Assembly: GCF_022045235.1 (NCBI RefSeq)
Contig: NW_027266266.1
Coordinates: 16,554,001 to 16,618,000, forward strand
Source of the DNA: Haliotis cracherodii
Lineage: Eukaryota
Direction of reading: 5' to 3'
DNA length: 64,000 nt
A program made the position numbers and the translations under genes. How positions within the stretch are numbered: position 1 is the first letter of the stretch; every line of letters starts with the position of its first letter. Below the pieces are notes generated by a model, which was not told where the DNA came from, made no database searches, and saw nothing but the letters and a program-made list of their open reading frames with translations. This document shows positions 1-51,702 of the stretch, in pieces.

Positions 1-323
1 ATCAAGGTGTAGAAGGCCGGATAGAAGTTGGAGATGGTGTAGATGAGGTGACACACCCATGATAGAATAATACACCTCTTGATACCAAAATATCGTATTA
101 CAGTTGGTGCCAGGATTCCTGAGAATACGAAAGCTCCATACACTGCACTGAGGGAGAATACACCGAGGTCATGTTCCTCATTGAGGCTGCTTTGGAGGTT
201 CTGTAGGGCATGGTATGCTGTAAATGCTGCGAGGAAAGCCGATGCCAAAATCAAGCAGTTTCTGGTTTCCTTGCCATGTATCGTTGTGTCTTTCCCATTT
301 TCTTCAGATTCGGACGTCATCAT
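1..323 (-). CDS. UNC93A: UNC-93-like MFS protein, copy 1 (5' part of first coding exon; runs off window start)
   Basis: Manual minus-strand translation from ATG 323: MMTSESEENGKDTTIHGKETRNCLILASAFLAAFTAYHALQNLQSSLNEEHDLGVFSLSAVYG...SNFYPAFYTL. Has the UNC-93 hallmarks LQNLQSSLN and NFYP. A splice acceptor (ttcag) lies just upstream of the ATG. Missing from the ORF track because it has no stop in the window. Confidence 0.9.
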   Translation of the reverse strand, partial: MMTSESEENGKDTTIHGKETRNCLILASAFLAAFTAYHALQNLQSSLNEEHDLGVFSLSAVYGAFVFSGILAPTVIRYFGIKRCIILSWVCHLIYTISNFYPAFYTL

Positions 324-717
324 TCCTTATATTCCTGAATTAACAATAAGTACTAATGATAACAAAGTGTCTATGAAAAACTATAGTGAATCGTGTATGA
401 GTATGTGTCTGCATTCTCAAGCCATGTTATAAGTCAGTTATTGGAATAAGCTTCAAAACAGGTCAAGGTAAATTAAATTAAAGAGAGTGATAATTATTTT
501 TATAAGTTACATTATAATATTCATCTATCAGGATCGTGATTGTACTACAGTAACCGAAATAAATACCTGTGTACTGTGTAGCTATATATATATATATATA
601 TATATCTCAATGTGCATTGACACGTGTGTATTTGTTCTCGGTTACCTAGATAAGATGCAAGCAACTGTCAAGGTTACCAGGCTACTAAAAGGACAACATT
701 CGTGTCTCATACACCAG

Positions 718-46460: not shown

Positions 46461-49026
46461 CTGAAATGAGACCATACTATAACAGTATAACAGGCGCCGT
46501 TATGCTGCTTGCGCTTTCAAGGATTTTCAAACAAGTTTCTATTAAACTGTCGATCTTCATAGACATTCTATGTTAAAAGTGACCGCCTAGATGCTATCTC
46601 AGAATCTGCTCATCCCAGTCAACTGACCCAAATGTAATTCAGTACCTTCAAATATACATGGACATATGCAACATAGTTCTTAAAAGGAAAATATTTCAAC
46701 GTCAGCGCCAGAGCAAAACCAGTCTCAGATTTCCAAAAAGCAGATTCCATTGGGCGTAATATGTTATGAATGATCATTGAAAATCAGTGTAAATACCAGG
46801 TGTTCTACCATGACACAATATTACACGAAGTCTTTGGTGTTAGCGAATATATGAGTTAAGTCCAGTTAAGTCGATACAGCGTTAAGAATCCCCGACAACT
46901 CAATTAAAACAGATCATGTAGCTGTTTATTTTCCAACAGAGATTTCTGATTAACGCACTTGCACCCGAAGCATTAAAAGTGTCCACCACGGCGAATGAGT
47001 AAGTACACAATTATTGGATTGCCCCGAATGTGCTATCAATAATCATAAGAAATCTCTGCTTAAAGCAGAGTCTTTTGTACGGATGAGACTAGACCATTAG
47101 CATGTGTTTATGAATCACAATCAAATAGTGTTGATACCTGGTACCAAACAAATGTATGATACCATGAACAGTCATTCACGCCATTGGTTTTTTCGGTGTT
47201 ACATGTACATAGTGAGCTCACATATTGACAACCCGCGGCCGATCCTTACTTTGGCCGGCAAGTTGTTGAAGGGGCTGTCCCTTGGCATGGTATCCGCGCA
47301 AGGCTCAAAAAAACGTAGCAAATGATGTGCGAAAAGGTTACGGGAGTTCAGCACAAGGACATAAACGGTACATGTGTGTTTGATTGATTTGGTGACGTTG
47401 TTATATACATTTGCCATAAGAGAGCGGAGATCTCATACACTGAAGTGATCTGCATCAAACTGAAAATGATACAAATCTCACAATAGACAACATTAACAAC
47501 ATTTTTTATTCAACAATAACCGTCAGGACATGATTACCCTTTTCTCGAATACCGGGTGTTATCACTAATTTCCAGCAATTGGTACAATTTTCGCAGCTCT
47601 TCTGCGTTTTATGTCTAATGGAATCTGTTTCAGCAGATAATCGAGACTGGTTATTTTCTGTCTTTGATGTTTCATATCTACTATTTATATATGGTTATTT
47701 TAAGGATAATTTTGTTATCAAAGCAAGCTGCAACTCTCCAATGATGGAGCAACAAACTGAACTGTATGCGCCCAAGTAACCCAAATGAAGGTTACTGTGC
47801 GGTAAAGGGATGAGGAGATTCTTTGCAATGACAAAAGGGTCATACACACAAAGATAGTGTTGGTTTTTGTAAATTGTCAGTATTTTTTGTGAGGAATAAC
47901 AACATTAAAGGAAACATAATCATGCACCACAATCAGATTTAAATCAGATTTATTAAAATGAGTTGTTCCAGGAGATTTGAAAAACTAAACCTTTCGTGAC
48001 TATCCCAGCATATGAACGATTTTGGTTGCCATCACTGATTTCATAACTGATTTTCAGTGATCCATTCATATAATTTTCATCTCCAATTTTGTATTTTACG
48101 CCCAATGGAATCTGTTTCGTCGGATAATCTAGGTTAGTTAATCTCTGGCGTTGACGTCATATATTTACATATATATTTCTAAGTGGGGAAAAAGTGAAGT
48201 CGGAGGAAGCGGTCATCAAATTAGACCATAACTGCTGTGTTGTAACATACACCTGTCCACACCTGTCAACATGATCCCGTTTCACACTAAAGATACGATG
48301 ATTTAGTTGTACATATAAATATAAGAAAGCCACGTGATAAATCGCAAAGAACAATGAAGAAATAGTCATGGTTAATTTCACGATAAACATTGTTCTATCT
48401 TAAAGTCATTTCTGGAGATTCGTACAAACACTCGCATCTTGATGAAATCGTAAATTGGACGACGCTATTTTAGGGTTGTTCATGCATCCCGTTTGATGCA
48501 TATGGGCAACACATATAAACGCAATTGCCGAGCAATTTCATTAAAAAGTGGGTGCGATATGTCAATCTGCGATGGGGAAATGACCGTCAATTGCTTTGGT
48601 GTTTGTGAGAATATTCAGACATAGCTATCAAAACATGTACTAGAAGTCTACTTTAACGTGCATAGTCATGGAGGTCACACAGATTAAAGTATTTATAGTG
48701 ATTCAGATAAGAGAATGCACTTGGATGCAAGAGTTCCTTCTGCTGTAATTGCTTCGTCACTGGCATGCTTAGCAACGTCCGTGACTATCCACATTCCTTC
48801 ATACTTCTTTACTGGTGAACTTGTCACTTTTCGACACAATTCACCAACAGAACAGTTCATCCAAATGGCGATGTATGGTTTATTGTTGATATAGTTCTAG
48901 CAGGTTTTCAGATTTTTCTTAAGGAAACCGCAGTTTATCCTTCATAACTATCGAGTAATGCTGTACTAAACACATTTGGATTTTGAAATTGAAATTCCTA
49001 TTGAATCACCATCCAACTGTCTTAAA

Positions 49027-51702
49027 ATGAAGAAAGAAGAGGAACCCAAGACATATTCCTTTGAAGGGAAGGAAACAAGAAGTAGCGTTGTGCTTGCAGC
49101 TTCTTTCTTTGTGGCCTATTCTGCTTACACGGCCATTCAGAACCTACAAAGCAGTCTCAATGAAGCGGAAGATCTTGGAATCATTTCTTTGAACGTTCTG
49201 TATGCATGCATTATATTTTCTGGAATTATGGCACCGGCTGTAATCCGGTTCATGGGAATCAAAATGACAATAATCCTGTCTTGGGTGATCCACCTTTTGT
49301 ACACAAGCTCGAACTTCTATCCGGCATTTTCCACCCTCATTCCTTCTTCAGTTCTTCTCGGAGCCATCTCAGGTTTTCTGTGGACGAGTCAGAGTGTTTA
49401 CATTTCAGTCTGTTCCTACTCGCTTGCCAAGTCTACAGGAGCAGTCCCTTACGATGTCCTCTGTAAATTGAATGGATTGTTCTTCACCATATTTGAAACC
49501 ACCCAGATTCCAGGCAACCTTGTCTCGTCACTGATCCTACAATCAGGAACTTACAGCAATGTCACAGGAGAACCTGTTTGTGGGTCTGACTATTGTCCTG
49601 GGGCATCAAACGGAACAGACATAGCCTCTCCAGAGATGAGTCTGGTGTACATTCTTCTTGGCATCTATCTTGGATGTGATATTATTGCTTTGATCATCAC
49701 GATTATCTTCTTACCACCTTTACCGACAAGTGGGTGGAACAGCAATACCAGTTTGAAGCAGTCTCTGCGTTCCTTCTTCGTGACGTTATTCACCAGCAAG
49801 ATGATATTCCTGGTCCCTTTCATAATGTTCCAATCGGTGGAACAAGCCATATTATGGTCAGACTACACAAGGGTAGGTTAATTGTTCTTTAGCCATTGTA
49901 TCATAATGAGATTGGACATTGTTGAGCAAGAACTGATATTTTCAAAGTGATATTTTCAATGCAGTGAAGTTAACACTTAATATTTCACTTCAGTGACAAG
50001 TCAATTTTTGGTTTCTCCCGATGTGTGTTGCTGGATTACAAATCGCTTTCACACAAAATTTAGAAAACCTATCAATACTGTTGGCATGAGTTTATGCACT
50101 GTTCCTTTCTGTGTAAATCAGTATGTATGCAACGGGTAATATGTATTCTATAGGTAGTATATATGACTCAGCCAGAATGAATGCAAAAGACAGTACATGT
50201 GCAATAAGCAGCATGTGTGGAATAGGCAATATATGCAATATGCGGCTTATATGCAACAGTCAGTTTATATACAATAAGCGGTAAGCATGCAACATTCAGT
50301 ATATTTGTATTCAACAGAAGGTACAAAATGGTATGCAATATGCAATGTGCAGTATATATTCAATAAACAGTAAGTGTGCAATAGGCAACATATATATAAT
50401 AGGCAGTATGTATGCATTAAGCAATATGTATGCAACAGGCAGAATAGGCAATATTAATGCAATACGCAGTATCGATGCTAGGAGCAGTATTTATGCAACA
50501 AGACAATATGTATGCAACAGGGAGAATGAATACAATAGGAAATATTAATGCAATAGGCAGTATCGATGCTAGGAGCAGTATTTATGCAACACGCAATATG
50601 TATGCAACAGGCAGAATAAATACAATAGGAAATATTAATGCAATAGACAGTATGAATACATGACGCAGTGTGTATGCAATAAGAAGTATGTATGCAATAG
50701 CCATTTAGTATTTAATAGCATGGAATGTATCAACAGTCATCATACGTTCTGTTGCAGTCCTATGTCAGCTGTCCTATCGGAATACAAATGGTTGGTTTCG
50801 TCATGACAACGTACGGGGCAACCACTGCGTCCTGTGCCTGCCTATTCAGTCGCATTGCGAAGTACATTGGACGTTACATTCTCTTCTTCACTGCTGCTGT
50901 TTTACACGGCGGGATGTTTGTAACGCTGTATCTGTGGACGCCGACAAGCGACGACACCAAGTACATCTTCGTCATCCCCATTGTATGGGCTATTGGGGAA
51001 GGAATATGGCAAACACAATCCAACTGTAAGAACCTTTTACATTCATTTACTTCGTTATCCTGTTCAGTTTCTCTTATTGATAAAAGGGGCGGTCGGGTAG
51101 CCTAGTGGTTAAAGCGTTCGCTCGTCACGCCGAGAACCGGGTTCGATTCCCGACATGGGTACAATGTGTGATCCCATTTATGGTGTCCCCCGCCGTGATA
51201 TTGCTGGAATATTGCTAAAAGCGGTGTAAAGCCATACTCACTCATTTATTGATAAAATCTCATAACTATCAGGATACTGGTGACCTAGTCGCCATTACAA
51301 TAAAACTTACCCAGAGGAAAGTACAATTACGCAGGGCAAAGTCGGAAACACGACGTCATGTATCCTTGACGTCACATCGGACTTAACGCCATATCAAATT
51401 GGACCTTGTTTTGATTTTCTTCAGCTCTGATAGCCATGCTGTTCCCGGAAAAGACCGGACCAGCCTTTGCCAACTTCCACACATGGAAAGCCATCGGATT
51501 CACCCTTATATTAGTACTGAGCAACTTTCTGTGTTTGAAGACAAAACTTATTTGTGTGCTGGCTTTGTTAGCCTTGGCTATGACTATGTACACAGGCGTA
51601 GAGATTTATGCACTAGTGCAACAGAAGCGCAAAGCGGTCGCAGCTACCACTTCAATAAAAATTAGCTCAAATGACACAAAGGAATCTAAATTTACAAACT
51701 GA
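49027..51702 (+). CDS. UNC93A: UNC-93-like MFS protein, copy 6; exons 49027-49872, 50758-51025, 51425-51702 (463 aa)
   Basis: Closest paralog of copy 5, with identical exon lengths 846/268/278, canonical splice sites and intact frame. Confidence 0.93.
51085..51243 (+). mobile_element. SINE family B in intron 2 of copy 6
   Basis: Flanked by the direct repeat ttattgataaaa. Absent from the equivalent intron of copy 5. Confidence 0.85.

Follow-up and report, generated by a model that had tools for sequence, protein, structure and literature searches.

We examined a 64,000-nucleotide (nt) stretch of the black abalone genome (Haliotis cracherodii, NCBI RefSeq assembly GCF_022045235.1, contig NW_027266266.1, positions 16,554,001 to 16,618,000 of the forward strand; hereafter the window), which carries a tandem array of genes related to UNC-93, a family within the major facilitator superfamily (MFS). 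Searches by tblastn with exon translations and with Haliotis proteins, together with the listing of open reading frames (ORFs), located six UNC-93-like loci between positions 1 and 51702: five complete three-exon genes (copies A to E) and exon 1 of a sixth (copy 0), which is cut by the window edge. An earlier, sequence-only reading of this DNA had described five complete genes and one edge-cut gene in mixed orientation, and both the tblastn searches and the gene models bear this out (Table 1). The reading also supposed that the array might continue leftwards, which proved right for copy 0 alone. The remainder of that gene lies just outside the window (window-relative -1 to -531, -1624 to -1893 and -3429 to -3653) and is 99-100% identical to P0114, a 449-amino-acid (aa) H. 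cracherodii protein whose residues 1-107 are matched at 100% by the part inside the window; but neither the adjoining 60 kb on the left and 30 kb on the right nor the spacers between the genes yielded a further UNC-93-like copy. The array therefore consists of exactly six genes and spans 55.4 kb, from the last coding exon of copy 0 (window-relative -3653) to the stop codon of copy E (51702).

Table 1. Positions of the array genes and of other features discussed in the text. Numbers are window coordinates unless a locus is named; negative numbers lie to the left of the window.
Feature	Position	Strand	Details
Copy 0	1..323	-	coding exon 1 up to codon 107; ATG at 323-321
Copy A	exons 2621-3466, 3972-4239, 4669-4997	+	480 aa; P0112 = XP_071093110
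Copy B	exons 18413-19258, 20024-20291, 20926-21191	+	459 aa; P0003 = XP_071093111
Copy C	exons 32295-31450, 30202-29935, 28610-28327	-	465 aa; P0111 = XP_071093112
Copy D	exons 37313-38158, 39209-39476, 39855-40132	+	463 aa; P0106 = XP_071093113
Copy E	exons 49027-49872, 50758-51025, 51425-51702	+	463 aa; P0002 = XP_071093114
Assembly gap (Ns)	25577-25719		in the 7.1-kb spacer bounded by the stop codons of convergent B (21189-21191) and C (28327-28329)
Tc1/mariner-type transposase frame, 281 aa	23569-24414	+	HTH_Tnp_Tc3_2, E 7e-19; weak DDE_3; between B and C, 1.1 kb to the left of the gap
GH1 (beta-glucosidase or lactase-like) exons, at least 5	-57.5 kb to -13.7 kb (L028, L035, L034, L030)	both	PF00232, E 1e-24 to 1e-40
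Matrixin (matrix metalloproteinase, MMP) catalytic-domain exon, zinc-binding end	63408-63719	-	PF00413, E 4e-29; right-hand neighbour gene
Two-pore-domain K+ channel (K2P) exons beside the intronless array	L037:6114-6734; L039:5843-6412		

The five complete copies are built alike, with coding exons of 846, 268 and 266-329 nt, GT-AG at all four splice junctions of each gene, no in-frame stops and a total length divisible by three. Window exons were searched singly, and full-length comparisons used the matching database proteins (P0112, P0003, P0111, P0106 and P0002 for copies A to E, and P0114 for copy 0). Exons 1 and 2 of copy C and exon 1 of copies D and E were 100% identical to these proteins, and the mismatches between copy A and P0112 were confined to places where the tblastn alignment ran past an exon edge. 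The exons of the window reproduce the H. cracherodii RefSeq proteins residue for residue: the lengths of A to E equal those of XP_071093110-XP_071093114, five consecutive RefSeq accessions named "protein unc-93 homolog A-like", and all six array genes are existing RefSeq models. The assembly gap in the B-C spacer is intergenic and touches no exon; tblastn found no UNC-93-like coding similarity between 21191 and 28327. A TG-rich simple repeat that starts at 25720 adjoins the right edge of the gap, and continuity across the gap cannot be established.

Membership of the Pfam family UNC-93 (PF05978; gathering cut-off 22.9 bits) was supported by exon 1 in the two copies that we scanned individually (D, 41.8 bits, E 1e-10; B, 54.8 bits, E 1.1e-14), and in a genome-wide scan with the same profile all six copies scored above the cut-off. 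The nearest named relatives are Haliotis proteins called "protein unc-93 homolog A-like", followed by proteins of other molluscs at ~40-54% identity and then by bird UNC93A, which gave the best vertebrate matches (32-36% identity over 89% of exon 1, E ~1e-39 to 1e-43). Vertebrate sequences among the 103 matches were all UNC93A, an amphioxus match was labelled 'UNC93A-like', and neither UNC93B1 nor MFSD11 occurred among the 103. In family membership, length (~450-480 aa) and twelve-helix MFS fold, the array proteins resemble vertebrate UNC93A and Drosophila CG4928. An AlphaFold2 model of P0002, the protein of copy E, built with 41 aligned homologues (pLDDT 85.3, pTM 0.86), shows twelve long helices and a beta-hairpin within the loop between helices 5 and 6. 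That loop carries two N-glycosylation sequons in every copy, and its residues C185, C190 and N195 are invariant across all 41 homologues.

The only solved structure related by sequence is UNC93B1, the endosomal chaperone of Toll-like receptors (TLRs; PDB 7c76 and 7c77). One option put forward in the sequence-only reading was that the copies serve as partners of an expanded receptor family, for instance molluscan TLRs, in which case the array would supply diversified trafficking chaperones of the UNC93B1 kind. UNC93B1 was the sole PDB match of full-length P0002 (E 3e-18, 18-19% identity) and headed the Foldseek search with the P0002 model (TM 0.81, 19% identity), ahead of MFS carriers that included VMAT, SV2A and NorA; this search returned 451 PDB matches at E <= 0.001, the best 50 of which were all UNC93B1 or MFS-type carriers. 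UNC93B1 leads these lists, however, because no UNC93A structure has been solved, and both the sequence matches and the architecture of the proteins point elsewhere. A chaperone of this type has a long N-terminal cytosolic region and ~600 aa, whereas the abalone proteins have 449-480 aa, are ~130 residues shorter than UNC93B1 and lack its N-terminal extension. They start ~15 residues ahead of helix 1, and residue 63 of P0002 aligns with residue 120 of the 7c77_B chain, which gives UNC93B1 ~57 extra N-terminal residues. The window and the flanks that we examined showed no TIR or TLR-like gene. The array proteins thus share an overall fold and distant homology with UNC93B1 but are MFS-fold members of the UNC93A branch, a different subfamily, and because they are of this type and not of the UNC93B1 type the TLR-partner idea finds no support; we consider it very improbable. 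The subfamily assignment carries the caveat that the trees contained no MFSD11 or UNC93B1 sequences.

The origin of the array was addressed with phylogenetic trees. A careful maximum-likelihood analysis united the six copies with twelve Haliotis proteins, among them orthologues from H. asinina, H. rufescens and H. rubra, in one clade (support 100/99). The remaining UNC93A-type loci of the H. cracherodii genome fell outside this clade, as did Gigantopelta, bivalves and limpets. Two quick trees with wider sampling recovered the same clade with a support of 99, and the 30 closest unnamed database proteins all lay outside it. The trees contained no one-to-one orthologues of the copies outside Haliotis, the outcome that would have marked an ancient subfamily, and the lineage-specific expansion proposed by the sequence-only reading is upheld. 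The clade comprises five lineages (0, A, B, C and D/E). All but C include an H. asinina orthologue and are therefore older than the split of H. asinina from the Californian abalones; for lineage C an orthologue was retrieved from H. rufescens only. Copies D and E diverged before the H. asinina and H. rubra proteins branched from D (97/93), and since these two species have two D-like copies each, copy turnover continues.

Protein identity between the copies ranges from 57% (0 versus C) to 87% (D versus E). D and E are the youngest pair. Their DNA similarity covers ~150 nt upstream of the genes, runs into intron 1, includes parts of the introns and extends as colinear blocks across the downstream spacers (43.0-47.1 kb versus 52.6-58.6 kb), which indicates that the pair was born of a tandem duplication with a unit of ~11.7 kb. 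The array grew by serial local duplication, with the ~11.7-kb event that gave rise to D and E as its last step; its mixed orientation implies at least two inversions or inverted duplications.

Whether the copies are functional genes was assessed from their substitution patterns and their transcripts. The ratio of nonsynonymous to synonymous substitution (dN/dS) was calculated exon by exon between paralogues by the Nei-Gojobori method (NG86). For exon 1 of the older pairs it was 0.08-0.17 at a dS of 1.0-3.4, which is saturated; for the D/E pair it was 0.36-0.45 (0.36 for exon 1, at a dS of 0.17), and exons 2 and 3 gave 0.17-0.60. These values, well below 1, show that the copies, all of them intact, are under purifying selection, in agreement with the suggestion that the expansion has been kept by selection.

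For expression we used contigs of four RNA-like runs with four organism labels, aligned to positions 1-6000 of the window, a region that holds copies 0 and A. Copy A is transcribed, with spliced contigs in all four runs, and its splicing is as predicted: in run X2 a 721-nt contig passes directly from 4239 to 4669, in run X8 a 383-nt contig passes from 3465 to 3971, and in run X6 a 1515-nt contig covers all three exons. Minor forms were also present, one using an alternative acceptor at 3939 that adds 32 nt out of frame (run X6) and one retaining intron 1 (3467-3971) with intron 2 removed (run X1). Copy 0 is transcribed as well, as seen in a 1686-nt contig (run X6) over 1-335 on the minus strand and in shorter contigs of runs X1 and X8. 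Logan-derived (transcript-derived) protein fragments are present in the database for both of these copies.

Decaying duplicates or assembly artefacts among the copies could have produced part of this picture, and two observations would fit that explanation, namely that no transcript-derived protein fragments were found for copies B to E and that the array contains an assembly gap. The gap is intergenic, however, and all copies have open frames and canonical splice sites, with dN/dS far below 1. For every copy, one or more other Haliotis assemblies contain a conserved orthologue, and the protein of copy B is identical in H. cracherodii and H. rufescens. The protein-level divergence of 13-43% between the copies, together with the separate orthologue of each in other Haliotis assemblies, led us to rule out uncollapsed haplotypes and assembly duplicates. 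We consider decay or artefact very improbable. The outcomes named in advance as fatal to a maintained expansion (silent copies, dN/dS near 1 or haplotypes) did not appear: both copies covered by the transcript data (0 and A) are expressed, the dN/dS values lie well under 1, and divergence between the copies is too great for haplotypes.

We conclude that the array is very probably an ordinary abalone-lineage tandem expansion of UNC93A-like genes. The sequence-only reading had called it the best candidate for an undescribed system, a description that we do not retain: because all six copies are already in the public annotation, it is a gene-family expansion and not a new system, and its neighbourhood (GH1 genes on the left, a matrixin gene on the right) offers nothing that joins the array genes into one. 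It adds one more lineage-specific expansion to a mollusc genome that is rich in them.

How the copies differ bears on what they might do. Mean identity among the six is 61-80% in the helices, 40% at the N terminus and 18% in the C-terminal tail, so divergence is spread evenly over the helices and is highest in the cytoplasmic tails, and no helix stands out as a diversified pocket. A division of labour by way of expression, trafficking or regulation would account for this concentration of differences in the two tails, as opposed to any one helix, better than a diversified substrate pocket would.

The sequence-only reading had offered, as one explanation for the expansion, a set of diversified transporters for diet-derived sugars or ions, each copy tuned to its own substrate. 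The MFS transporter fold is compatible with this, and circumstantial evidence comes from the GH1 beta-glucosidase genes directly left of the array and from an H. discus hannai "Unc93A" that appears, with many digestive glycosidases, in a list of genes differentially expressed in the gonad (PMC11989308). That table entry, the single mention of an abalone UNC93A that we found in the literature, cannot be mapped to this array, and adjacency to GH1 genes is no evidence of a shared function. The even spread of paralogue differences over the helices, with its peak in the tails, also speaks against one tuned pocket, and CG4928/UNC93A moved neither sugars nor amino acids in the one direct test (PMC7591606). 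We regard substrate-tuned transporters as rather unlikely.

Two relatives suggest a different role. Caenorhabditis elegans UNC-93, the founding member of the Pfam family to which the array belongs, is a genetic partner and regulatory subunit of the K2P channel SUP-9, together with SUP-10, and is the source of the K+ channel-partner hypothesis. In Drosophila, knockdown of CG4928/UNC93A disturbs secretion by the Malpighian (renal) tubule and its K+ content, and the protein co-localises with TASK1 and alters membrane potential (PMC7591606). Because of the CG4928 data and the UNC-93/SUP-9 precedent, we favour modulation of K+ or membrane potential over solute carriage: by analogy, the most likely role of the array proteins would be to adjust K+ flux or membrane potential in epithelia. 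As to their mode of action, partnership with two-pore K+ channels has a little under an even chance in our estimation, and action as ion or solute carriers is a tentative possibility that we rank lower. UNC93A is among the least understood MFS proteins, and whether it acts as a carrier or as a K+ channel partner is still unsettled; six to twenty diverged and selected copies in one animal provide natural variants for this question.

Genome-wide, in the 1.18-Gb, 80-contig assembly, we counted 26-27 exon-level UNC-93 matches, of which about 20 are of the UNC93A type; fifteen lie on contig C3, which also carries the window. The view that the UNC-93 family is usually low-copy, on which the sequence-only reading had relied, does not hold for molluscs. 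UNC93A is a single-copy gene in vertebrates, as against six tandem genes and about 20 UNC93A-type loci in this abalone, and tandem sets occur in other molluscs. Patella caerulea has four consecutively tagged genes (SNE40_006509-006512) that form a clade of their own, Mercenaria mercenaria has several UNC93A-like genes on one chromosome, and Mercenaria, Mya, Tegillarca, Solemya and Gigantopelta have two or more such genes each. A second six-gene array in H. cracherodii, at C3:36,163,700-36,207,500 (36.16-36.21 Mb; L009-L014), is entirely on the plus strand and consists of single intron-free ORFs of 460-548 aa; it has lost its introns, unlike the three-exon array of the window. The sets in P. 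caerulea, Mercenaria and the intronless array share with our array the family, the local tandem duplication and the formation of lineage-specific clades, but they are independent expansions, none of them orthologous to it copy for copy. Local tandem duplication seems to be a habit of the UNC93A-like family in molluscs; we found no paper describing a UNC93A expansion in this phylum. A long-ORF UNC-93 locus (L025) that we tried as a possible UNC93B1 orthologue gave no PDB UNC93B1 match. Two further UNC-93 loci 99 kb apart on the same contig (L018 and L019, at C3:3,862,568 and 3,961,651) have identical exon-1 proteins and could reflect a recent segmental duplication or an assembly duplication.

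The intronless array has K2P neighbours. The last exon of a K2P gene, with GYG and GFG pores, lies 9 kb upstream of it in the same orientation, at C3:36.154 Mb, and 62 kb downstream there is an exon of a paralogous K2P. By chance ~0.02 K2P loci would be expected this close to any UNC-93 cluster, in a test that was post hoc. The best solved relatives of this channel are KCNK9 and KCNK3, and its mollusc orthologues mostly carry TWiK-18/KCNK18-like source names, a few being sup-9-like at ~42%. Given the UNC-93/SUP-9 precedent, the adjacency hints at a functional pairing and serves as a lead, with the reserve that it was noticed post hoc. A broader proposal would be that the ~20 UNC93A-type genes, with their two six-gene arrays, are a diversified set of auxiliary subunits matched to the large molluscan K2P repertoire, represented in this genome by at least 71 pore-domain matches. 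We think this a long shot; if true, the genes together would allow leak K+ conductance to be tuned combinatorially in epithelia or excitable cells, with the array of the window as one half of the set.

Several observations weigh against the picture of a selected, abalone-only expansion whose products modulate K+. The estimates of dN/dS rest on paralogues, with saturated dS (>1) in the old pairs. Databases may lack non-Haliotis vetigastropods, so that "abalone-only" could stand for a somewhat wider clade. For copies B to E the database holds no Logan-derived protein fragments, and the transcript contigs cover copies 0 and A only; because such fragments are missing, B to E may be weakly or narrowly expressed. 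The function of the array proteins is one that we infer, by analogy. The channel precedent also has no counterpart at this locus: no K2P or SUP-10-like gene lies near the window's array, the genome holds no K2P pore-domain match within 4.7 Mb of it, and the intronless array at 36.16 Mb is the only one with a K2P neighbour. The black abalone is endangered, and expression of each copy in gill, in digestive gland and in withering-syndrome infection might have applied interest.

Two features of individual copies deserve mention. Copy 0 (P0114) departs from otherwise near-invariant residues, with 'VEQAILW' in helix 7 replaced by 'VVGAFFF' and, after it, 'GEGIWQTQSNSLIA' replaced by 'ADGIFMTQLIALVA'. 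It is nonetheless conserved (97% in H. rufescens and 81% in H. asinina) as well as transcribed, and may have acquired a new function. Exon 2 of copies B to E showed a synonymous divergence of 0.12-0.62, and of 0.12-0.36 in all pairs except B-C; exon 1 stands well above this, at 1.0-1.5 for the B to E pairs other than D-E. The DNA similarity of these second exons (81-88%) ends near the exon edges. Short gene-conversion tracts, or constraint on the RNA itself, could account for the low divergence.

Outside the array, the left flank has at least five GH1 exons, spread over both strands, which suggests that a tandem set of two or more GH1 genes adjoins the array. A second Tc1/mariner-type fragment, in addition to the transposase frame between copies B and C, lies left of the window (L030:4471-5100). 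A minisatellite at 12886-13740 reads as a 284-aa Cys-rich open frame, and a tandem repeat at 55782-56272 matches itself at offsets that are multiples of 64 bp. A dispersed repeat occurs at 711-1068, 12287-12669 and 21424-21777 and has very high contig depth in the RNA-like runs, and repeats at 1801-2200 and 5001-5600 have likewise high depth.

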